From contig CM097884.1 of the NCBI GenBank assembly GCA_044892505.1, forward strand, positions 91,264,001 through 91,328,000: a stretch of 64,000 nt of DNA, written 5' to 3'. The DNA is from Schmidtea nova (Eukaryota). A model generated the notes under the pieces. It was given only the letters and a program-made list of their open reading frames with translations, made no database searches and had not been told where the DNA came from. The position numbers were made by a program, and so were the translations under genes. Below, piece after piece: positions 1-63,792 of this stretch (position 1 is its first letter; the number at the start of each line of letters is the position of its first letter).

Positions 1-3000
1 CCACATCATTATGTGAAGAAAGTGACAATCAAATTTGAAGTGACGAAAGTTGTTAAAGTGAAATTGGTTGTGAAAGGCTGTGTTGACAAAGTACCGACGC
101 CGCCAACATTGCGTCCAACAACTAAATCTACTCCAACTAGACCAGGAGCTACAACAACTACAACTAGACGAACAACGACTCTGAAACCATGTGCCGTGAA
201 ACTCGTCATCAAAGATAAGCAATTGACAGGAATTACAGTGACACCAAAGATTTCCAAGAGTGATGTTAAAAAGTTGAGACCTGATTGGAAACATCCAAAA
301 CAAGGTGTTGAGTTCAAACGTGGAAAACACACAATTGTTGTCAAGATCGTCAAAGGCACTCACCAAAAGAAACCAAACAGAATCACAGCAGCCGGTTTGA
401 AAGTAGTCAATGTCAATCCAGGCGACAAATTGAGCAAATACTTCAAGTCAGTTACAATTGTAATTACGAAACAAAAGTTCACAAGAGGTGGCAAACGAAA
501 GACTGTCAAGAAAACGATTAAAGTCCCATTGAAAACAATTGTTGACGATTTGAGAAATGTGTTGAGAAAACCACATCATTATGTGAAGAAAGTGACATTC
601 AAATTTGAAGTGACGAAAGTTGTTAAAGTGAAATTGGTTGTGAAAGGCTGTGTTGACAAAGTACCGACGCCACCAACATTGCGTCCAACAACTAAATCTA
701 CTCCAACTAGACCAGGAGCTACAACAACTACAACTAGACGAACAACGACTCTGAAACCATGTGCCGTGAAACTCGTCATCAAAGATAAGCAATTGACAGG
801 AATTACAGTGACACCAAAGATTTCCAAGAGTGATGTTAAAAAGTTGAGACCTGATTGGAAACATCCAAAACAAGGTGTTGAGTTCAAACGTGGAAAACAC
901 ACAATTGTTGTCAAGATCGTCAAAGGCACTCACCAAAAGAAACCAAACAGAATCACAGCAGCCGGTTTGAAAGTAGTCAATGTCAATCCAGGCGACAAAT
1001 TGAGCAAATACTTCAAGTCAGTTACAATTGTAATTACGAAACAAAAGTTCACAAGAGGTGGCAAACGAAAGACTGTCAAGAAAACGATTAAAGTCCCATT
1101 GAAAACAATTTTTGACGATTTGAGAAATGTGTTGAGAAAACCACATCATTATGTGAAGAAAGTGACATTCAAATTTGAAGTGACGAAAGTTGTTAAAGTG
1201 AAATTGGTTGTGAAAGGCTGTGTTGACAAAGTACCGACGCCGCCAACATTGCGTCCAACAACTAAATCTACTCCAACTAGACCAGGAGCTACAACAACTA
1301 CAACTAGACGAACAACGACTCTGAAACCATGTGCCGTGAAACTCGTCATCAAAGATAAGCAATTGACAGGAATTACAGTGACACCAAAGATTTCCAAGAG
1401 TGATGTTAAAAAGTTGAGACCTGATTGGAAACATCCAAAACAAGGTGTTGAGTTCAAACGTGGAAAACACACAATTGTTGTCAAGATCGTCAAAGGCACT
1501 CACCAAAAGAAACCAAACAGAATCACAGCAGCCGGTTTGAAAGTAGTCAATGTCAATCCAGGCGACAAATTGAGCAAATACTTCAAGTCAGTTACAATTG
1601 TAATTACGAAACAAAAGTTCACAAGAGGTGGCAAACGAAAGACTGTCAAGAAAACGATTAAAGTCCCATTGAAAACAATTTTTGACGATTTGAAAAACGT
1701 TTTGAGAAAACCACATCATTATGTGAAGAAAGTGACAATCAAATTTGAAGTGACGAAAGTTGTTAAAGTGAAATTGGTTGTGAAAGGCTGTGTTGACAAA
1801 GTACCGACGCCGCCAACATTGCGTCCAACAACTAAATCTACTCCAACTAGACCAGGAGCTACAACAACTACAACTAGACGAACAACGACTCTGAAACCAT
1901 GTGCCGTGAAACTCGTCATCAAAGATAAGCAATTGACAGGAATTACAGTGACACCAAAGATTTCCAAGAGTGATGTTAAAAAGTTGAGACCTGATTGGAA
2001 ACATCCAAAACAAGGTGTTGAGTTCAAACGTGGAAAACACACAATTGTTGTCAAGATCGTCAAAGGCACTCACCAAAAGAAACCAAACAGAATCACAGCA
2101 GCCGGTTTGAAAGTAGTCAATGTCAATCCAGGCGACAAATTGAGCAAATACTTCAAGTCAGTTACAATTGTAATTACGAAACAAAAGTTCACAAGAGGTG
2201 GCAAACGAAAGACTGTCAAGAAAACGATTAAAGTCCCATTGAAAACAATTGTTGACGATTTGAGAAATGTGTTGAGAAAACCACATCATTATGTGAAGAA
2301 AGTGACATTCAAATTTGAAGTGACGAAAGTTGTTAAAGTGAAATTGGTTGTGAAAGGCTGTGTTGACAAAGTACCGACGCCACCAACATTGCGTCCAACA
2401 ACTAAATCTACTCCAACTAGACCAGGAGCTACAACAACTACAACTAGACGAACAACGACTCTGAAACCATGTGCCGTGAAACTCGTCATCAAAGATAAGC
2501 AATTGACAGGAATTACAGTGACACCAAAGATTTCCAAGAGTGATGTTAAAAAGTTGAGACCTGATTGGAAACATCCAAAACAAGGTGTTGAGTTCAAACG
2601 TGGAAAACACACAATTGTTGTCAAGATCGTCAAAGGCACTCACCAAAAGAAACCAAACAGAATCACAGCAGCCGGTTTGAAAGTAGTCAATGTCAATCCA
2701 GGCGACAAATTGAGCAAATACTTCAAGTCAGTTACAATTGTAATTACGAAACAAAAGTTCACAAGAGGTGGCAAACGAAAGACTGTCAAGAAAACGATTA
2801 AAGTCCCATTGAAAACAATTTTTGACGATTTGAAAAACGTTTTGAGAAAACCACATCATTATGTGAAGAAAGTGACAATCAAATTTGAAGTGACGAAAGT
2901 TGTTAAAGTGAAATTGGTTGTGAAAGGCTGTGTTGACAAAGTACCGACGCCGCCAACATTGCGTCCAACAACTAAATCTACTCCAACTAGACCAGGAGCT

Positions 3001-48000: not shown

Positions 48001-48178
48001 ACTAAATCTACTCCAACTAGACCAGGAGCTACAACAACTACAACTAGACGAACAACGACTCTGAAACCATGTGCCGTGAAACTCGTCATCAAAGATAAGC
48101 AATTGACAGGAATTACAGTGACACCAAAGATTTCCAAGAGTGATGTTAAAAAGTTGAGACCTGATTGGAAACATCCAA
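1..48178 (+). repeat. Coding tandem array of 570-bp units (190 aa), 84 full units plus a partial 85th
   Basis: The unit start ccacatcattatgtgaag recurs at 1, 571, 1141 and so on to 47881 (1+570x84; two late units read ccg). Only substitutions were seen, no indels. Identity to the consensus ends at 48178. Confidence 0.98.
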
Positions 48179-51100
48179 GTCAAGGTGTTAGTTTTAATAT
48201 TGGTCAACATAAAATTGAGGTCCTTTTAAACAATTCAATTTCCTCTGTGTCATCAATAGGTTTAATTGCTCCTTTAGTTTCATATTCGTCTCTTACTTCA
48301 TTATATTTTGATTATTTGAGCATATTCATTAATTACCGCACTTCCTCTCATGTTACAACATTAGTTTATCGTTCTCAACCACTTTCTATGTTTTCTGTTT
48401 TGCCTAACGTAGTAAATAGTTCTCTGTTTGATGTGGCTTCAATCACTTATAAATTTTCTGTTGTTCAAGTAATCAAGCTTCGCCTCAATATACAAGGTTG
48501 TCTGAAATATTACATTTCGTCTCCTCCCATTTCTTCTTTATCGTCGTCGTCAGCTACTCCACCAGTATCCTTATCCGCAATCTCCTCTACACCTTTGCCA
48601 TTTACTTTGCCACCTTCTCTGACTCCGTGTCTGGATTCAAATCTTGTTGTCAATGAAAATTTCACCGAATTCAAATTCTCTCCACCTTTAACAAAATGTG
48701 AAGAAAAGAAAATCCGCCATAACTTTACAAATTCTTTGGTTGGCGTGCGTCTCATATGCGGTTCTCACTCTATTACTGTTTTCATTAAGGATCATGAATC
48801 ATTTGTTACAAATAATATTGTTTTCCAAATAGGTATGTTCATTGTCAACAGTTCTACTTCTGATTCCTTTAGTAAATACTTTGAATATTTTGATTTAGTT
48901 ATTAGTCGACATTCCATTTTATCTTTTGATTCTGAGCCTTTGTCACCGCTGACAGTTTTCAGTTTTCCACTTTCTAGCAAAATTGAAAGACTTCCAAGCA
49001 TGATCAACTCTGTTCAACAGAATGTAGAATTCATTCGCTTTGATTTTAAGTTGAAATCGGATGTTGTTATTAAGCTATTAGTTAATGGTTGCGTTAAAAA
49101 ATATCTCTCCTCTACACTTACTACTCTTCCTACCGGTTTTGTACAGGAAGAAACATATAAGTGTGAGAAAACATACAACTTGTTGGATAATTTGTTATTA
49201 TTTAAAATTTCTGCAGACCAGAATAATGATTTGAACTTAAATTCTTTGAGGCATCCTAAAAAAGGTTATTCATTCCAAAGTGGTTTTTATTCTATCAAAT
49301 TTTCCTTGCCCCCTTCTCAAAATATAAATATTGCAGAATTCGGTTTAAGATTATTGGATAAGATCAGCGATAGTTCTGCTAACGATTTCATTGAAATATC
49401 CAACATCTTCGTTGTACGGTTGGTTAGGAGCTTTGGTCGTGTTGTCGGAAGAAAGGTTTCTATACCGACTCCTGATCGCTTGACTGTGAATAATGTTAAT
49501 AAACTTATAAAGACTAGCTTGTCATCAATTAATAAAATAGTTATAAAATTCATTATCAAACGAAATGTCAGAATCAGTGCAACAATGAAAGGCTGCACGA
49601 AAGCCGATGCTAAACTTATCACAACATCCAAACCTTCAATGATTTCTCCATTTACACCTTTCATAAATGAGCAATCTTTCACTTGCCGATACACGTTCAA
49701 TTTACTCAAAAATAATAATTTTAATTTGAAAATTATTCCGAATTTACCTGAAACGAAGTTAGACAAATTGAAATTGGTAAAAAAGTCCAAACAAGCTGGC
49801 GTGGTTTTAGGCAAAGGGTTTTATTCGATTGAATTATCCTTGCCCACCGATGAAAGTCAAAACGTTCTTGAACTCGGTTTAGTTATTTATGATGAAAGCA
49901 ATGGAAGATATACAAACAATTTGATTAAACTTGTGAAAATTGAAGTTGTCCGGTTAACGAGAAGTTTCGGTAAAATGGTTTCAAGAAATATGCCGATATC
50001 TATTCCGGAAAATTTGTCCGTAAGAGATGTTAGAAATGTTTTGTCTAATGGAATTAATAATATTAACAAAATTACATTGAAGTTCTACGTAAAAAGAGAC
50101 TTAAAGATAAGCGTTAATGTTAAAGGTTGTAAAGATTCTGACAAAGATCTCCTTCTATCCACAGTGACTCCAACACCAGTTATCAATGATGAATCGTATC
50201 GATGCTCGGTTGTTAGAAGCCTTCTACAAGATTTAAGAAATATACAATTGAACGTCAAGCCAGCAATTTCATCTGCTGATGCCAACAAATTAAGAGGTTT
50301 ATTTGATTCGTTGACTAGAGGAGCGACTCTGATTAAAGGAGAATACATTTTCGAAATAAATCTTAATCCTGGTCAAACTTTAAATGTCATCGAAATCGGT
50401 CTTTTAATTTTGAATCACAATGAAAACAAACCTGTTTCCAGTGTCATTCAGTCAATCGGTGTTTCTGTGACACGACTTGTTAAATCATTTGGTCGACTCA
50501 AAGAAGTCAATGTACCCCTTAATATTCCAGATGATCTGTCAATAAAAGATTTGAAAAATATTATGACCTCTGCTATTAACAACATCAACAAAGTAATGAT
50601 AAAATTACAACTGAAGAGAAGTATCAAAGCAGAAATTAACTTCAAAGGTTGCTCCAGCTTCGACTCAACAACTACAGCACAAAGTTCGACAGTAACTCCA
50701 TTTATCAATGAAGAATCATATCAATGTGAAAGCATTGTCAATTTGTTGGATTTACAGAAATCAGTAAAATTATCCAAAGTTCCACCGTTGTCTGCAGCTG
50801 ACAATTTACGATTGAGGTTGACAACAATCCGTCCAAATTTAGGAGCGCCTATCATCAAAGGTCAACAGGAAATTTCAATTTCATTCCCAACTGGTGAGAA
50901 AGGAACAATTGTGAAATTTGGTTTGAATATTATTGGTGAAAACAGCAACAGATTTGTGCAAAACTTTATCAAAAATCTCGCAGTTACTGCATATCGAGTT
51001 CGAATGAGTTTTGGTAATATAATCTCGACCCCAATGAAAATTAATTTACCATCAAAATTGACTGTTGGAAAACTGAAAAATATTCTTTCCACTCAAATAG

Positions 51101-51218
51101 CAAATGTTAATAAAATCGTTATTACATTTGAGACTTTGAAAAAGATTCAACTTAACATCATTATGAATGGATGCTTTTCTTCTACAGTCTTGAAAACTAC
51201 AACTTTACCTCCTGTGGG
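1..51218 (+). CDS. Giant 5'-partial coding segment (apparently one exon) of a repetitive extracellular adhesive/mucin-like protein
   Basis: Frame 1 is open from base 1 (cca cat cat tat gtg = PHHYV) to the N gap at 51219, giving 17,072 complete codons. The track's M at 13 is an internal GTG. No signal peptide or start is in the window, and I saw no intron-like interruption. Confidence 0.9.
48070..51174 (+). repeat. Six diverged in-frame copies of the array domain (Cys...GC)
   Basis: Cys-to-Cys spans: 48070-48501 (chimeric), 48628-49092, 49162-49596, 49684-50130, 50203-50652, 50725-51174, i.e. 144-155 aa. Each ends in a hydrophobic strand plus GC (LNIQGC, LLVNGC, ATMKGC, VNVKGC, INFKGC, IIMNGC) and is followed by an S/T/P-rich linker. 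Confidence 0.88.
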
Positions 51219-51885
51219 NNNNNNNNNNNNNNNNNNNNNNNNNNNNNNNNNNNNNNNNNNNNNNNNNNNNNNNNNNNNNNNNNNNNNNNNNNNNNNNNNN
51301 NNNNNNNNNNNNNNNNNNNNNNNNNNNNNNNNNNNNNNNNNNNNNNNNNNNNNNNNNNNNNNNNNNNNNNNNNNNNNNNNNNNNNNNNNNNNNNNNNNNN
51401 NNNNNNNNNNNNNNNNNNNNNNNNNNNNNNNNNNNNNNNNNNNNNNNNNNNNNNNNNNNNNNNNNNNNNNNNNNNNNNNNNNNNNNNNNNNNNNNNNNNN
51501 NNNNNNNNNNNNNNNNNNNNNNNNNNNNNNNNNNNNNNNNNNNNNNNNNNNNNNNNNNNNNNNNNNNNNNNNNNNNNNNNNNNNNNNNNNNNNNNNNNNN
51601 NNNNNNNNNNNNNNNNNNNNNNNNNNNNNNNNNNNNNNNNNNNNNNNNNNNNNNNNNNNNNNNNNNNNNNNNNNNNNNNNNNNNNNNNNNNNNNNNNNNN
51701 NNNNNNNNNNNNNNNNNNNNNNNNNNNNNNNNNNNNNNNNNNNNNNNNNNNNNNNNNNNNNNNNNNNNNNNNNNNNNNNNNNNNNNNNNNNNNNNNNNNN
51801 NNNNNNNNNNNNNNNNNNNNNNNNNNNNNNNNNNNNNNNNNNNNNNNNNNNNNNNNNNNNNNNNNNNNNNNNNNNNNNNNNNNNN
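51219..51885. other. Assembly gap (667 N) inside the giant gene
   Basis: Run of N. Frame continuity across it cannot be verified. Confidence 0.99.
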
Positions 51886-54233
51886 AACAAATACTATTCA
51901 CATGGCCAAATCATCCAAGAAAAATTAGAGTGTGACTCCAAGTAGAAAAATATAATTTTAATTACGTTGAGAGTGTTAATAATTTTTTCGTAGAATTTGT
52001 TCTGATGGTAGAACAATTCCAATTGTTGTTTGTAATAATAAATGGACAAAATGGCAGAAATGTTCCAAATTTTGTGGAGCAGGTGAAACTTCACGACGAC
52101 AATTTTGCATATTGAATCAATTGATGCGAAGCATTGATAAACAAGACCTAATAAAGAAAATTAATGGAAATTGTTTGAATAAAATCGAAGTGAAGCCATG
52201 TTTTGATCAACCTTGTCAAGGTACCGTTTAAAAAAGTATATTGGAGTATAAATTATATTTTAGAATCATGTAAATTAACCGAATGGTCCGATTGGAGTCC
52301 GTGTGACAACACCAGTTGTAAAGACGAATATCAAACCAGAGTTAGACAACTTATTAATGCTAACAAAAACAGCCTTTGTACAAAAGCATTAATGGAATCT
52401 CGAAGATGCATGAAACCACAATGTTTGTTAATTATGGAATTTTTCGTTATAGTTTAATTAACCGAATTAGGTCCATGTGCGGAAAATGCCGTCCTACACG
52501 AGTGCGCCAATATCTTGTGTCCAACGTCATGCAGCCATATGAATCCACGTGTAAGATGCGTCTCCAGCACTAATAACTGTATCAAAGCTTGCGTTTGCAA
52601 ATTGGGTTATCTTTACCAAAATGGAAAATGTGTTCGCAGATCTCAGTGCCTGTGCTTGGCACCTAATTTTAACACGATAATGCTTTCTAAATCATCTTCA
52701 ACTACTGATAGTCAAAAAGCGACAATGGTTCAATTTTTTAATCTGTAATTCTAATTTTATTTTATTTTTATTAGACCTATCCCGGACAAAGCCAAACAAG
52801 CAATTCCGAAAGTCCCGGAGATTCAAATAAATCCAGCTCAACATCGTCATCATCCACGACAACTAAGTTGTCGAATGCTATAATCACAGAACTTTCAAAA
52901 GAAGATCTTGATAAAATAAAACATAATAAGCAATTTACTCCACCGTGGAGACCCGGTTATACAAATCCTCCTCTTTATCAGTAATTCAATTTTGAGAAGT
53001 AATATTAAACATTGATCAATGTAGAGCTAGTCCAGCATGGTATGCGGGCGCAACTCCAGCGGGAGCCACAATAAAATTGCCCGACAATTCAGCTACTGAA
53101 CAGAAGATTGACAATGTGCCAACAGGTTCTAAAGCCACCAATCCCGTAAATTCGCCTGAAACATCGCCGACTATTAAATATTTCGTAACGCAAAAATACG
53201 CCCCGTCAAATTCTAATCAGAACCAAAATCAAAATCAAAATGCTGGCGCGTCTGTAACAACTCAAAAGTCTCAACAGTTGACATCCGATTCACTTTTATC
53301 TGGCTCATCAAGTGAGTTTTATTTTGTAACAATCATCCATAATGGCTTTTAAAATTTTCTAGAAAGTCCAAGTTCACAACCTGGACAAGGGTCTCAATCT
53401 CCTGACTCAGCAGCCAGTGGCTCTCTTCAACCGACCGGCTCTGGTAATTTACAAGGCACAGTTACTAGTTTCCCGGGTTTCAGTTTATCGACAATAGATA
53501 AAAGTCACGTAAACGCAAATTCAACTGTGATCTTAGACTGCCAGTCATGGTTTGATGGTTTTTATTATTATTTTCGATTAAAATTTCAAATTCAGTGTCT
53601 GCACAAATGGGCGATTAGTATGTAATGGGCCCCGGTGTATAAGTGAGTTCTGAAGCGAATTTCTGCGATAAATTATTATTGTAAACCTCTAGTTGGCAAT
53701 AATACTTGGTCCGATTGGTCAGCATGGTCCCCTTGCACCGGTATTTGCGGAACTGGAATTAGAAGAAGATTTAGACAGTGTCAAGGAATCAATTGCAAAG
53801 ATACTTCTACCAGTGAAGCTGGATTTACAAGATTTATGGCGACGAATGATGTCCAAGCTGAAGATAAACAATGCATGATTAAAGAATGTTCTTGCGTGTT
53901 TTCTAAAGAATTAATGAAGGTATGTATAACAATTAAAATGATCCTTGAATAAATAGCGATTATTCATTGAAACAGATCCATATTGGAGAAAGTTCTATCA
54001 AAAAATTTAATATCGACTTATCGGCTTTCTGGATCGAAAAAGACAATGTGAAAGGTTTGTCGCACAGCAAAGAATTAGTGAAATCTGGAGATGTCATCAA
54101 AAGTGGAATAACAATTCAAGCCAAATGCAGTCAATGGTAAATTACATTTATTCTGCTGAAATTATTCTTACATGTCAATATGTTTAGCTCTTGCAAGGAC
54201 GGGCAATTCAAGTGCACAACTGAATGTTCGTAA
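51886..54233 (+). CDS. Spliced C-terminal part of the giant protein: 11 exons, 619 aa plus stop
   Basis: Exons 51886-51941, 51994-52220, 52264-52422, 52471-52727, 52775-52980, 53025-53311, 53363-53549, 53596-53642, 53693-53919, 53976-54136, 54188-54233. All 10 introns are GT-AG and 43-56 nt. Exon lengths sum to 1860 nt in one open frame ending ...CSCKDGQFKCTTECS*. Linkage to the giant exon across the gap is inferred from strand and proximity. Confidence 0.85.
52043..52216 (+). other. Thrombospondin type-1 repeat 1
   Basis: WTKWQKCSKFCGAGETSRRQFC...NCLNKIEVKPCFDQPC fits the WxxWxxCSxxCGxGxxxRxRxC pattern. Confidence 0.88.
52264..52422 (+). other. Thrombospondin type-1 repeat 2 (spondin-like)
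   Basis: CKLTEWSDWSPCDNTSCKDEYQTRVR...CTKALMESRRCMKPQC. Confidence 0.88.
52476..52649 (+). other. TIL (trypsin inhibitor-like cysteine-rich) domain
   Basis: CAENAVLHECANILCPTSCSHMNPRVRCVSSTNNCIKACVCKLGYLYQNGKCVRRSQC has the 10-Cys TIL spacing. Confidence 0.9.
53707..53889 (+). other. Thrombospondin type-1 repeat 3
   Basis: WSDWSAWSPCTGICGTGIRRRFRQCQGINC...EDKQCMIKEC. This frame differs from the one the ORF track reports at 53693. Confidence 0.92.
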
Positions 54234-54271
54234 TTTTAAAACAATAACTTGTGAAATTTGTGTTGATTAAT

Positions 54272-54277
54272 AATAAA
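54272..54277 (+). terminator. Polyadenylation signal AATAAA
   Basis: Lies 38 nt after the stop at 54233, followed by T-rich sequence. Confidence 0.6.
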
Positions 54278-54660
54278 TCTTCTGCTTAAATTGTGATTTT
54301 TTAAATTTTCTTTTCATTGATAAAATTAAAAAAATTATTATATCTTTCGGATATTCTGAGCCGTATTAAAACTGTCGACAATAATTGCAATGAAAAATCG
54401 TAATAAACATCAATCAGTACTATATTTTATGTATTTTTTTATTATTTGATTAAATGAAGTAACTGATTTGTTCCAAGAAATGTCGATGTGAAATTTTAAT
54501 TATGTATTAACCAAAAATAATTTTACAAATTGAAAAGGATAAGATTACACCAGGGTGAATAAATCCAATATCATGCATATTTGTCACTTCAATAAAACAA
54601 AAAATTCAAAAATTGGGGATTTGAGTTTTAATGAAAAATCTTTGAATTTTTTTTTAATAT

Positions 54661-54832: not shown

Positions 54833-55018
54833 TTATTATTATCAATAATTCTCATAATGACTATAGATCAAAATTTTTTTTTTATAAACAATACCACAAT
54901 ATTTCGGCACAGCCTTTATCAAGTGTGTATTACACACTTGATAAAGGCTGTGCCGAAATATTGTGGTATTGTTTATAAAAAAAAAATTTTGATCTATAGT
55001 CATTATGAGAATTATTGA

Positions 55019-55027
<9 letters not shown>
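54833..55027. repeat. Perfect palindrome with 97-bp arms and a 1-nt spacer
   Basis: Centre is aagtgtgta-t-tacacactt with the spacer at 54930. Arms 54833-54929 and 54931-55027 are exact reverse complements, including the T10/A10 runs. Confidence 0.95.

Positions 55028-55028
<1 letters not shown>

Positions 55029-55082
<54 letters not shown>
55029..55082 (+). repeat. (AAT)18 microsatellite
   Basis: Uninterrupted aat run directly after the palindrome. Confidence 0.97.
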
Positions 55083-55086
<4 letters not shown>

Positions 55087-56971: not shown

Positions 56972-57667
56972 TTATAAGAATGATTTTTTCCTGGCTTTCA
57001 TGTCTGCAAATTTTTCTATTGCTGCCTCCAAATTTAGGTTTGCTACAACATTATTTTCAATTGAAATAATGGCCAAATTATTCAACCTATCTTCCGTCAT
57101 AGTAGATCGCAAATAAGTTTTTATTAGTTTTAATTTACTAAAACTTCTTTCACCACTCGCAACACTAACAGGAATTGTTACGAGGATTCGTAAAGCCACC
57201 CACAGATTTGGTACTGTACTTTTCAAATTATTGGAAAAGCTTCGATTATTTTCATCTCTTGGATAAATATGTTGTTGATTACACCTTTCTTCGTTTCCAT
57301 ATAAGTCAGATACAACTATATGGCCAATTTCCGTATGTTTTAAATTTTGTGGCCATAGCCCAATATCATTACAATTTAAAATATTTTCAAATACATAATG
57401 AGTTGAATCACTAGTAACAATTATTTCAGTTCCGTGAGAAGACATTAAATTATCCTCATTGATAATATTACAAGTTTCAGCTTCTGATGAAACATTACCT
57501 ATATCGTCCTCTGAGCTTGAAGATGTTGACTCGAAATGTTGATAATCATCGGCTACTGATTTACTGGATTTAAAATATTTCAATATTTTATCGTGCTTAT
57601 CAGCTTGTTGTTGTCTATTTATTTTTCGTTTCCGATATTCATACCCACTCAATTTTTTTGGTGGCAT
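56972..57667 (-). CDS. Truncated hAT transposase: N-terminus fused in frame to the C-terminal dimerisation domain (231 aa)
   Basis: Basic N-terminus MPPKKLSGYEYRKRK. C-terminus PNLWVALRILVTIPVSVASGERSFSKLKLIKTYLRSTMTEDRLNNLAIISIE is the hAT dimerisation signature. The catalytic core is absent. Confidence 0.88.
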   Translation of the reverse strand: MPPKKLSGYEYRKRKINRQQQADKHDKILKYFKSSKSVADDYQHFESTSSSSEDDIGNVSSEAETCNIINEDNLMSSHGTEIIVTSDSTHYVFENILNCNDIGLWPQNLKHTEIGHIVVSDLYGNEERCNQQHIYPRDENNRSFSNNLKSTVPNLWVALRILVTIPVSVASGERSFSKLKLIKTYLRSTMTEDRLNNLAIISIENNVVANLNLEAAIEKFADMKARKKSFL

Positions 57668-58183: not shown

Positions 58184-58972
58184 TTAATCTCCATTTCTGA
58201 ATATATTTTCCTTATTCATTTCATCATTTTTCATGTTTTGTAGGAGTACTAAAAGCCAATTCGATTTATTTAATATATATTGAGTATTAATAGATAATAC
58301 AGTTTTTAGTAGACGGGAATCTGGATCAATGATATCGAGAGTTGATCTGTACAAACTCTGTGACTGTCTGTATAGATTGATTTCCTGTGCAGATAAATGA
58401 TGCATTGAAAAAGACTGATTGTGATCCAGAGAATTTATTGATAGCGTTGTGAAGTTAGTCATCTCAGATGGGTCCAAATTGAGGTTCATGAGAGGTCCCT
58501 TGATTGATAAACACATCTCTGTTTGTACAGGTTCTTTTCGCCTTTCGATATTGAAACATTTTCGTAATTTAGAGAACTGACAATTGCTTCTTCTTTGAAT
58601 GTCAAATAAACAATAAAAATTTATGCATTTATGGTGTCGAACACGGCATTTGTTGCTATAAACTTTGCAGTCGGGTTCAGATTTTCGTTTTGACGTTTCG
58701 ATATTGGTATTGTTGTTGTTCAGCAAAAATGAGTAATTGTGTAGATCTTGGATAAAATGTTGTGAATTCTCAATCATGAAAAATCGGTCGATGTAAATTG
58801 AGCTGTTGACTGAAGACATCGAATCGTTTGAAGTTGCTTGCATTTTGTTTGTTTGATCAGCGTGAATATAAAAAAATGTGAATATTAAAACAACGTCCAT
58901 TAATTTTTTGCTCCATTTAATAATTATTATTCCAAATTTGGTTGATTGTTTGTTGATTAGTTTCTTTTTCAA
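58184..58972 (-). pseudogene. Intronless ORF carrying a degenerate nuclear-receptor-like C4 zinc-finger DNA-binding domain
   Basis: 58517-58669 encodes CKVYSNKCRVRHH-KCINFYCLFDIQRRSNCQFSKLRKCFNIERRKEPVQTE, resembling CxVCGDKxxGxHY...C...C.ID...R..CQxCRLxKCF..GMxKEAVQxE. The P-box segment is missing and two Cys are replaced. The track start is a non-ATG codon. Confidence 0.55.
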
Positions 58973-61308: not shown

Positions 61309-61833
61309 TCATTCATCGGCCATCTTTCCCCGATAGGAGAATATGGTCCGGATCTGGAGGTTGGTATTGATATCTTTTGGGGAAGATGTGACTTTCTGCA
61401 AGCATGCTTTCTCGGCCTCTCGGAGAGGTCGAATCGCTACATTGAACACGAGTCCCAACTCTTCGAAGGTTGAGGCCGGAATGTATCCCCAGTAGATGGC
61501 AAAATTCGGGAATCCTTTCTCGTCCAACATTAGGACAAACCACTCGGCATGCCATTTTTCGAATTCCTCATCCGGAACGATGGGCCAGTTGGCACAGCCT
61601 CGGTACCACACGTGATGACGTGGGTGATCCCATACAGTGAAGGGGCATGCCGTTTCCAACTTCCTCCTCCAGGCCCATATTTTTTGGTGGACTTGTTGAA
61701 TAATTTCGAACGGAGCGGGCTTTAACGGACTGGCCCGGACTCGGTTCCGCTTAAGAAATCCATTTTTCCAGCCCCACTGGTTCTCGGTTCTGGCTACTCT
61801 CTTTTTCCCGTGTTGTAACTTCCGATTTCTCAT
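61309..61833 (-). CDS. Unidentified Trp/His-rich protein, paralog A (174 aa)
   Basis: ATG-to-TGA intronless ORF. It is 75% identical (102/136, ungapped) to 63316..63792 with many synonymous differences, and AATAAA follows the stop. Confidence 0.85.
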   Translation of the reverse strand: MRNRKLQHGKKRVARTENQWGWKNGFLKRNRVRASPLKPAPFEIIQQVHQKIWAWRRKLETACPFTVWDHPRHHVWYRGCANWPIVPDEEFEKWHAEWFVLMLDEKGFPNFAIYWGYIPASTFEELGLVFNVAIRPLREAEKACLQKVTSSPKDINTNLQIRTIFSYRGKMADE

Positions 61834-63315: not shown

Positions 63316-63792
63316 ATGACCAAACACAGATTCGCCATCAAAAAACGACGAGAACGAGCCCGAATCAGACCATTAAAGCCGGCTCCATTTGAGATTTTGC
63401 AACAAATACATCAAAAAATGTGGGCATGGCGCCGAGAGCTTGAAACAGCATGTCCCTTTACAGTATGGGACCACCCACGGCATCACGTGTGGTACCGAGG
63501 CTGCGCTAGCTGGCCGATCATTCCAGACGAGGAATTCGAATCATGGCACGCCGCCTGGTTCGTCCTGATGTTAGATAAACGGGGATTCCCGAGCTGTGTG
63601 ATTTATTGGGGGTTCATTCCAGCCTCCACATTCAAGGAGTTAGGGTTCACTTTCCATACGGCAATACGACCCCTTCGGGAAGCCGAGAGGACCCGTCTCC
63701 AGCAAGCCTCACCCAACTCCACTGGAATCAGCTCTCATCTACAAATCAGATCGATATTTTCGTACCGAGGGAAAATGACCGAAGATGGATAG
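63316..63792 (+). CDS. Unidentified Trp/His-rich protein, paralog B (158 aa)
   Basis: ATG-to-TAG intronless ORF sharing the block LETACPFTVWDHPRHHVWYRGCA with paralog A. AATAAA lies downstream. Confidence 0.85.
   Translation: MTKHRFAIKKRRERARIRPLKPAPFEILQQIHQKMWAWRRELETACPFTVWDHPRHHVWYRGCASWPIIPDEEFESWHAAWFVLMLDKRGFPSCVIYWGFIPASTFKELGFTFHTAIRPLREAERTRLQQASPNSTGISSHLQIRSIFSYRGKMTEDG

Follow-up and report, generated by a model that had tools for sequence, protein, structure and literature searches.

A sequence-cryptic, predicted discoidin/CBM32-like domain repeated at least 84 times in a candidate ap2-type giant protein of Schmidtea nova

What kind of protein is encoded by a long and highly uniform coding array in the genome of Schmidtea nova (assembly GCA_044892505.1, contig CM097884.1, positions 91,264,001 to 91,328,000 of the forward strand), and what might such a protein be for? 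An earlier note, made from the letters of this 64,000-nucleotide (nt) stretch (hereafter the window), had read the repeat as a cysteine-capped domain with a possible remote discoidin/F5-8C-like fold, strung on threonine/proline linkers, rather than as a disordered mucin repeat. Structure prediction and structure searches support this proposal for both fold and architecture. The repeated block is predicted to be an independently folding extracellular β-sandwich of the galactose-binding-domain-like (discoidin/CBM32) type, and the composition and domain order of the gene suggest, by analogy and with moderate confidence, that it encodes a giant adhesive protein of the kind described in other flatworms as ap2.

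The array lies on the plus strand at 190-48069 and consists of 84 complete tandem units of exactly 570 nt in a single frame; its beginning lies beyond the left edge of the window, so that the unit count and the gene length are lower bounds. Each unit encodes 190 amino acids (aa), comprising a 154-aa block that runs from Cys (codon at 190-192 in the first full unit) to Gly-Cys (646-651) and a 36-aa Thr/Pro-rich linker whose sequence is as the earlier note quoted it. The two Cys residues placed by that note at the ends of the block are found in all 84 full units, each of which has exactly two, at unit positions 1 and 154. A strand quoted as VTIKFEV is the majority form of the array, but the unit at 190-651 itself reads VTFKFEV, the I137F variant. 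The frame through the array and the diverged copies that follow it is open for 17,072 codons, until a masked stretch at 51219, which, together with a unit length divisible by three, places the array far beyond chance. The portion of the gene within the window encodes at least 17,691 residues.

Six diverged copies of the domain follow the array at 48070-51174 (Table 1), and these, with the main unit, are the seven variants of which the earlier note spoke. Copies 2-6 share 20-25% identity with the main unit, and the diverged copies share 17-38% among themselves; the 48% of copy 1 is inflated by its identical first 36 residues. Homogenization breaks off at 48178, 109 nt into the 85th unit, and from 48179 the remainder of that unit mostly shows 10-37% nucleotide identity to the array. 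At this sharp break, inside a domain, gene conversion or unequal crossing-over reached its limit. Across the small but informative alignment of the main unit and all six diverged copies, C1, G39, G45, G69, P113, G153, and C154 are invariant, the number of Cys residues is even in every diverged copy, and the linkers between these copies are Ser/Thr/Pro-rich and 23-42 aa long. Invariant Cys, Gly, and Pro residues at such low identity give the picture expected when selection has long acted on a folded extracellular domain held by disulfides.

Structure models were obtained for the main unit, from the seven-sequence alignment (predicted local distance difference test, pLDDT, 86.2; predicted template modeling score, pTM, 0.83), and for diverged copy 5 (pLDDT 91.2, pTM 0.84). 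In both, eight or nine strands and two short helices follow one another in an identical order, and both would form the distorted jelly-roll β-sandwich of about 150 residues that defines the FA58C fold; loop 54-63 has the lowest confidence among the internal segments of the main unit. Foldseek related the models to galactose-binding-domain-like sandwiches with a best expectation value (E) of 5e-4 and template modeling (TM) scores of 0.45-0.54, and a shape search of the ESM-Atlas gave TM scores of 0.58-0.63 to bacterial carbohydrate-binding and F5_F8_type_C clusters. The top 50 structural matches were all sandwiches of this type and nothing else. They included carbohydrate-binding proteins (CBM32 modules, C-terminal modules of GH29 fucosidases, fucolectins), discoidin relatives (a bacterial F5/8 type C domain, discoidin I, factor VIII C, DDR1, neuropilin b1/b2), and the non-lectins DOC/APC10, IFT25, PITH, and netrin LN; the best CBM32 match was CBM32-6 of Clostridium perfringens GH89 (PDB 4a42), at 13-15% identity. 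Because the three lines of search agree, the assignment of the 154-aa block to an independently folding, galactose-binding-domain-like β-sandwich is solid for a prediction. The two confident models favor folded beads on a string over a disordered mucin repeat, and none of the top 50 matches was to an unrelated fold.

The two Cys residues can be compared with the discoidin disulfide. Structural alignments of both models, from residue 1 or 2 to the last, cover chain residues 273/274 to 424 of neuropilin-1 b1, 429/430 to 583 of neuropilin-1 b2, and 432/433 to 592 of NRP2 b2. Neuropilin-1 b1 is closed at the bottom of its barrel by a disulfide between Cys275 and Cys424 (PMC10385628). Since the neuropilin alignments span this region, the models place the two invariant Cys residues at, or within one or two residues of, the discoidin disulfide positions, and a disulfide between the first and last residues probably closes the domain.

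By sequence, the domain stands alone. None of the seven copies matched a Pfam family, PF00754 (F5_F8_type_C) being absent even at E up to 10, and the nominal hits to PDDEXK_10, MJ0548_N, DUF884, and DUF3857 (E 0.04-0.4) were dismissed as noise. A comparison of the profile of all seven variants with PDB sequences returned no match at E up to 10, and the 1,049-aa diverged stretch retrieved no relatives in a word-based homology search. An exhaustive profile search of 1.84 billion representatives produced three marginal matches (E 8e-5 to 6e-4), all bacterial Ig/HYR-repeat proteins in which the score sums 5-12 short, individually insignificant stretches; these were rejected, as was a feature search of the ESM-Atlas, whose scores (<0.9) were unusable. 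The ligand-binding loops (“spikes”) opposite the termini, which carry conserved residues in FA58C domains, carry none here, the invariant positions being confined to Cys, Gly, and Pro. With no real relative in any of these sequence searches, the block is a sequence orphan with a known fold, a new cryptic family rather than a member of Pfam F5_F8_type_C.

The domain is also extremely basic, with 42 Lys and Arg residues against 8 Asp and Glu; with the linker (net +6) the whole unit reaches a net charge of about +40, and Lys makes up 20.5% of its residues, Thr 14.7%, and Val 14.2%. The old terminal copies are far less basic (net −1 to +13), so the extreme charge is a property of the amplified unit. 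Because hydrophobic residues alternate with Lys along the strands of the main domain, much of this charge should face outward. The Thr/Pro linkers, judged by their composition, are probably O-glycosylated.

Variation within the array is slight. The 84 units exist in 23 nucleotide versions, 33 units are identical base for base, and only 18 sites vary (7 synonymous, 11 nonsynonymous). Units 1-35 are a mixture of three or four haplotypes (V118F, or K122R and I137F with linked synonymous changes); units 36-84 nearly all carry one haplotype and include the 33 identical units, a substructure that suggests successive expansions. Uniformity of this degree is at the limit of accurate long-read resolution, and the copy number is therefore provisional. 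Tandem Repeats Finder did not report the array in the window because the period of 570 exceeds its maximum of 500. Guanine-cytosine content is 38-39% in the array vs. 22-29% in the very AT-rich intergenic DNA. On the minus strand, every unit contains a TTG-started open reading frame (ORF) of 162 aa (448-48210); these ORFs were rejected as genes and regarded as by-products of the repeat, the splice sites and all domain matches being on the plus strand.

Transcription of the locus could be examined in four public sequencing runs of one study that contain the end of the array, none of them recorded as RNA, with contigs placed on 48400-54300. A 3,502-nt contig from run X4 is collinear with 49466-51218, bridges the masked stretch, and beyond it runs without nine short introns (GT..AG, 43-56 nt). 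Because a contig from run X3 retains these introns, as genomic DNA would, X4 must include RNA, and the locus gives rise to a spliced plus-strand transcript. The frame is kept across the masked stretch, since two leftover bases and 13 contig letters make 15 nt, and the exons joined after the gap leave 619 codons open, the intron at 52728-52774 being placed by GT..AG and frame. They encode, in order, two TSP1 modules, a TIL domain, a low-complexity region, a Cys-rich piece with a third TSP1 module, and a Cys-rich end whose 79 aa had no Pfam match (Table 1). Modules of the vWD, LDLa, or cystine-knot kind were not seen in the portion of the gene that the window covers. The tail (51942-54187) has ten introns, each of only 43-56 nt and GT..AG, and such tiny introns are a useful signature of gene structure in this genome. 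In the last exons and the 3′ untranslated region (53916-54300), contig depth in run X4 climbs from about 60 to 900-1,460; 3′ bias in the reads of a very long message, or a separate short transcript of high abundance, could explain the rise. Contigs of the RNA run stop at 49466 and 53985 with 44-54 unmatched letters, both ending in GTTTGGG; these may be 5′ ends of cDNA with library-derived letters, or chimeric contigs.

Table 1. Features of the repeat-bearing gene, in window coordinates.
Feature	Position	Strand	Basis or remark
End of a repeat unit truncated by the window edge (last domain strands and linker)	1-189	+	Frame and sequence as in later units; array extends upstream
154-aa Cys...Gly-Cys domain, net +34, isoelectric point 10.6, predicted discoidin/CBM32-like β-sandwich	190-651	+	Sequence, predicted fold
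36-aa Thr/Pro-rich basic linker, 61% Ser+Thr+Pro, net +6, candidate for mucin-type O-glycosylation	652-759	+	Composition
Homogenized array, 84 full 570-nt units	190-48069	+	18 variable sites in total
Diverged copy 1, hybrid (109 nt array-identical, diverged from 48179), 144 aa, 2 Cys	48070-48501	+	
Diverged copy 2, 155 aa, 4 Cys, acidic to neutral, 3 N-glycosylation sequons	48628-49092	+	
Diverged copy 3, 145 aa, 2 Cys	49162-49596	+	
Diverged copy 4, 149 aa, 2 Cys	49684-50130	+	
Diverged copy 5, 150 aa, 2 Cys, folded separately (pLDDT 91.2), predicted main-unit fold	50203-50652	+	
Diverged copy 6, 150 aa, 2 Cys	50725-51174	+	
Masked or gap stretch, 667 N	51219-51885		X4 contig joins 51218 to 51886 through 13 letters
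Short exon after the gap	51886-51941	+	GT..AG joint in RNA contig, open frame
Exon, TSP1 module 1	51994-52218	+	Weak: PF00090, 21.1 bits vs. cut-off of 21.6; TSP1_CCN, E 6e-5
Exon, TSP1 module 2 (WSDWSPC)	52262-52422	+	PF00090, 28.5 bits
Exon, TIL domain	52471-52727	+	PF01826, 37.7 bits
Three exons, Ser/Thr/Pro/Gln/Asn-rich low complexity, about 220 residues	52775-52980, 53025-53311, 53363-53548	+	
Two exons, Cys-rich piece and TSP1 module 3 (WSDWSAWSPC)	53595-53642, 53693-53917	+	PF00090, 24.1 bits
Last two exons, 79-aa Cys-rich end	53974-54136, 54188-54233	+	Stop codon ends at 54233; AATAAA at 54272

A core and tail of this kind recall the duo-gland temporary adhesive studied in three flatworm orders, of which ap2 is the substrate-contacting component; planarians possess a duo-gland marginal adhesive organ (PMC8602322). 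Mlig-ap2 of Macrostomum, for which RNA interference and footprint evidence exist and which contacts the substrate, has 14,794 aa, a core of 21 repeats of 255 aa and 25 of 221 aa, and C-terminal TSP-1 and TIL domains (PMC6410801, PMC8621496); an N-terminal signal peptide is a further ap2 feature, accompanied in Macrostomum by vWD, TIL, and LDL modules. Mile-ap2 of Minona has at least about 5,000 aa, with a Thr-rich unit present in at least 12 copies, an exon of at least 15 kilobases (kb), and three TSP-1 and one TIL at its C-terminal end (PMC6745481). Tmed-ap2 of Theama (7,228 aa) has repeat cores of 330 aa and 230 aa, three thrombospondin-like domains and one TIL at the C-terminus, 22.5% Lys, and 11% O-glycosylation motifs (PMC9229212). 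The repeats of ap2 are not conserved in primary sequence between taxa, and their function was unknown to the authors of these studies; our literature search found no fold assigned to them and no ap2 described from a triclad.

The Schmidtea nova gene resembles these proteins in its giant size, its central core of long tandem repeats in one giant exon, its content of about 20% Lys with Thr-rich linkers (20.5% here vs. 22.5% in Tmed-ap2), and, as in Minona and Theama, a tail with three TSP1 modules and a single TIL, the first TSP1 falling just under the cut-off. Its two-Cys-capped unit of 190 aa is within the range of 130-330 aa of ap2 core units, but it is present in 84 copies in the window vs. 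12-46. Since no sequence similarity to two short Minona ap2 fragments was detected, identification with ap2 rests on architecture and composition, and on these grounds we consider it probable that the gene encodes an ap2-type giant adhesive protein. What would then be new is a sequence-cryptic, polycationic discoidin/CBM32 variant on which the core of a giant secreted protein of the ap2 type is built.

Several points weigh against this identification, or against parts of it. The domain has no sequence similarity to any known family, and in comparisons of its profile with two short Minona ap2 fragments hhalign gave probabilities of 2% and <1%. The NLL, DKLRP, and G-x5-G motifs that seemed to be shared with the Minona ap2a unit (2%, in a different register) and the Cys-led start of Mile-ap2b (<1%) were accordingly rejected as likenesses. 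An ap2-like architecture could be convergent or shared with mucus proteins, and published models assign the strongest positive charge to the cohesive proteins ap1/ap3, not to ap2. The N-terminus, with any signal peptide and possible vWD/LDL domains, lies upstream of the window. Both structure models were built on one shallow seven-sequence alignment, in which the loops show none of the conserved residues that a lectin site would need. Finally, the evidence for transcription covers the locus from 49466 onward, with the homogenized core outside it, and comes from one RNA-bearing run that carries no tissue information.

Domains and linkers together would make the protein a polycation of stiff beads on a flexible string. 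If the gene does encode an ap2-type adhesive, this protein would be made in gland cells and secreted by exocytosis. Many cationic beads could bind negatively charged surfaces and polyanions multivalently, glycosylated linkers would hold the polymer extended and hydrated, and the Cys-rich TSP1/TIL tail might couple it to cohesive partner proteins.

The same bead-on-string protein could instead be a general mucus, rhabdite, cocoon/shell, or matrix glycoprotein rather than a duo-gland adhesive, a possibility of some weight although we hold it to be unlikely. Gel-forming and matrix proteins often have TSP1/TIL tails and Thr-rich linkers, the Minona study mentions mucus proteins whose domain architecture is ap1-like (PMC6745481), and the expression evidence, lacking tissue information, is compatible with such a role. 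However, a giant Lys-rich core in one exon combined with exactly three TSP1 and one TIL is what has been reported for ap2 in two flatworm orders, and the tail contains neither of the modules, the C-terminal cystine knot and the vWD assemblies, that flank the Pro/Thr/Ser core of gel-forming mucins.

A different role for the domain within the protein is more doubtful: it might be a true lectin for Gal/GalNAc-type glycans, possibly those on the neighboring linkers, so that the secretion cross-links itself and the charge is secondary. The nearest solved structures are indeed Gal/GalNAc/fucose-binding modules, one of them with the Tn antigen, and the ap2 of other flatworms carries Gal-β1,3-GalNAc, detected by peanut agglutinin. 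Yet none of the seven copies shares a conserved aromatic or polar loop residue with the others, only Gly, Pro, and Cys being invariant, and the fold is also used by the non-lectins DOC, IFT25, PITH, and netrin LN, so that sharing it does not show function. Scarcely less doubtful is a wider proposal in which flatworm ap2 repeats generally would be cryptic discoidin-type arrays, the domain acting as a lectin for the Gal-GalNAc O-glycans of the linkers in a self-cross-linking lectin-glycan network. That the array is merely a young satellite or an assembly artifact that happens to be open, with no real protein repeat behind it, is hardly credible, for although its 32-kb run of near-identical units exceeds the usual accurate read length, so that the copy number may be wrong, and the RNA evidence lies outside the core, the unit length is divisible by three, the six old diverged copies that share its frame belong to a transcript spliced to TSP1/TIL exons, the sequence is predicted to fold with high confidence, and four sequencing runs contain the end of the array.

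Beyond the gene, the very AT-rich intergenic DNA contains an (ATA)22 microsatellite at 55018-55084. A 231-aa ORF on the minus strand (56972-57667) matches the C-terminal dimerization domain of the hAT family (E 2e-13) and is probably a transposase remnant, and a 262-aa Asn/Ser-rich ORF on the same strand (58184-58972) had no Pfam match. Two clearly paralogous ORFs in inverted orientation (61309-61833, minus, 174 aa; 63316-63792, plus, 158 aa) gave no Pfam match and no ESM-Atlas lead, and may represent an uncharacterized repeated element.

Were the gene confirmed as ap2-type, a puzzling repeat would become a defined domain of 154 residues, open to expression, structure determination, and binding tests with surfaces, polyanions, and glycans, in a system in which flatworm temporary glue serves as a model for reversible wet adhesion. 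The locus is also a clear case of a domain family invisible to sequence searches and visible to structure prediction, and the gene may rank among the longest coding exons and proteins known.

Among known systems, the animal F5/8 type C domains (neuropilin b1/b2, factor VIII C, DDR1, discoidin I) differ from the array domain, which has no conserved Trp, shorter loops and an extreme basic charge, and does not match PF00754. Bacterial CBM32 modules have no terminal disulfide, and their sugar-binding loop residues are not conserved in the array domain. In giants of the SCO-spondin and gel-forming mucin types, TSP1, TIL, and discoidin-type modules occur together, or folded Cys domains alternate with Thr/Pro stretches, whereas the Schmidtea nova core is one domain type repeated. 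The sea urchin and sea star adhesives Nectin and Sfp1 are secreted temporary adhesives with tandem discoidin-fold domains (PMC10057474). Nectin differs in that its six FA58C domains are recognizable by sequence, in being Ser/Gly/Ala-rich instead of polycationic, and in having neither Thr/Pro linkers nor a TSP1/TIL tail, but its domains are disulfide-closed jelly-rolls (PMC10057474), as is probable here for the array domain. The array would connect flatworm adhesives structurally with sea urchin and sea star adhesives that are built on discoidin domains, and if the same were true of ap2 in general, flatworm and echinoderm temporary adhesives would share one structural principle.

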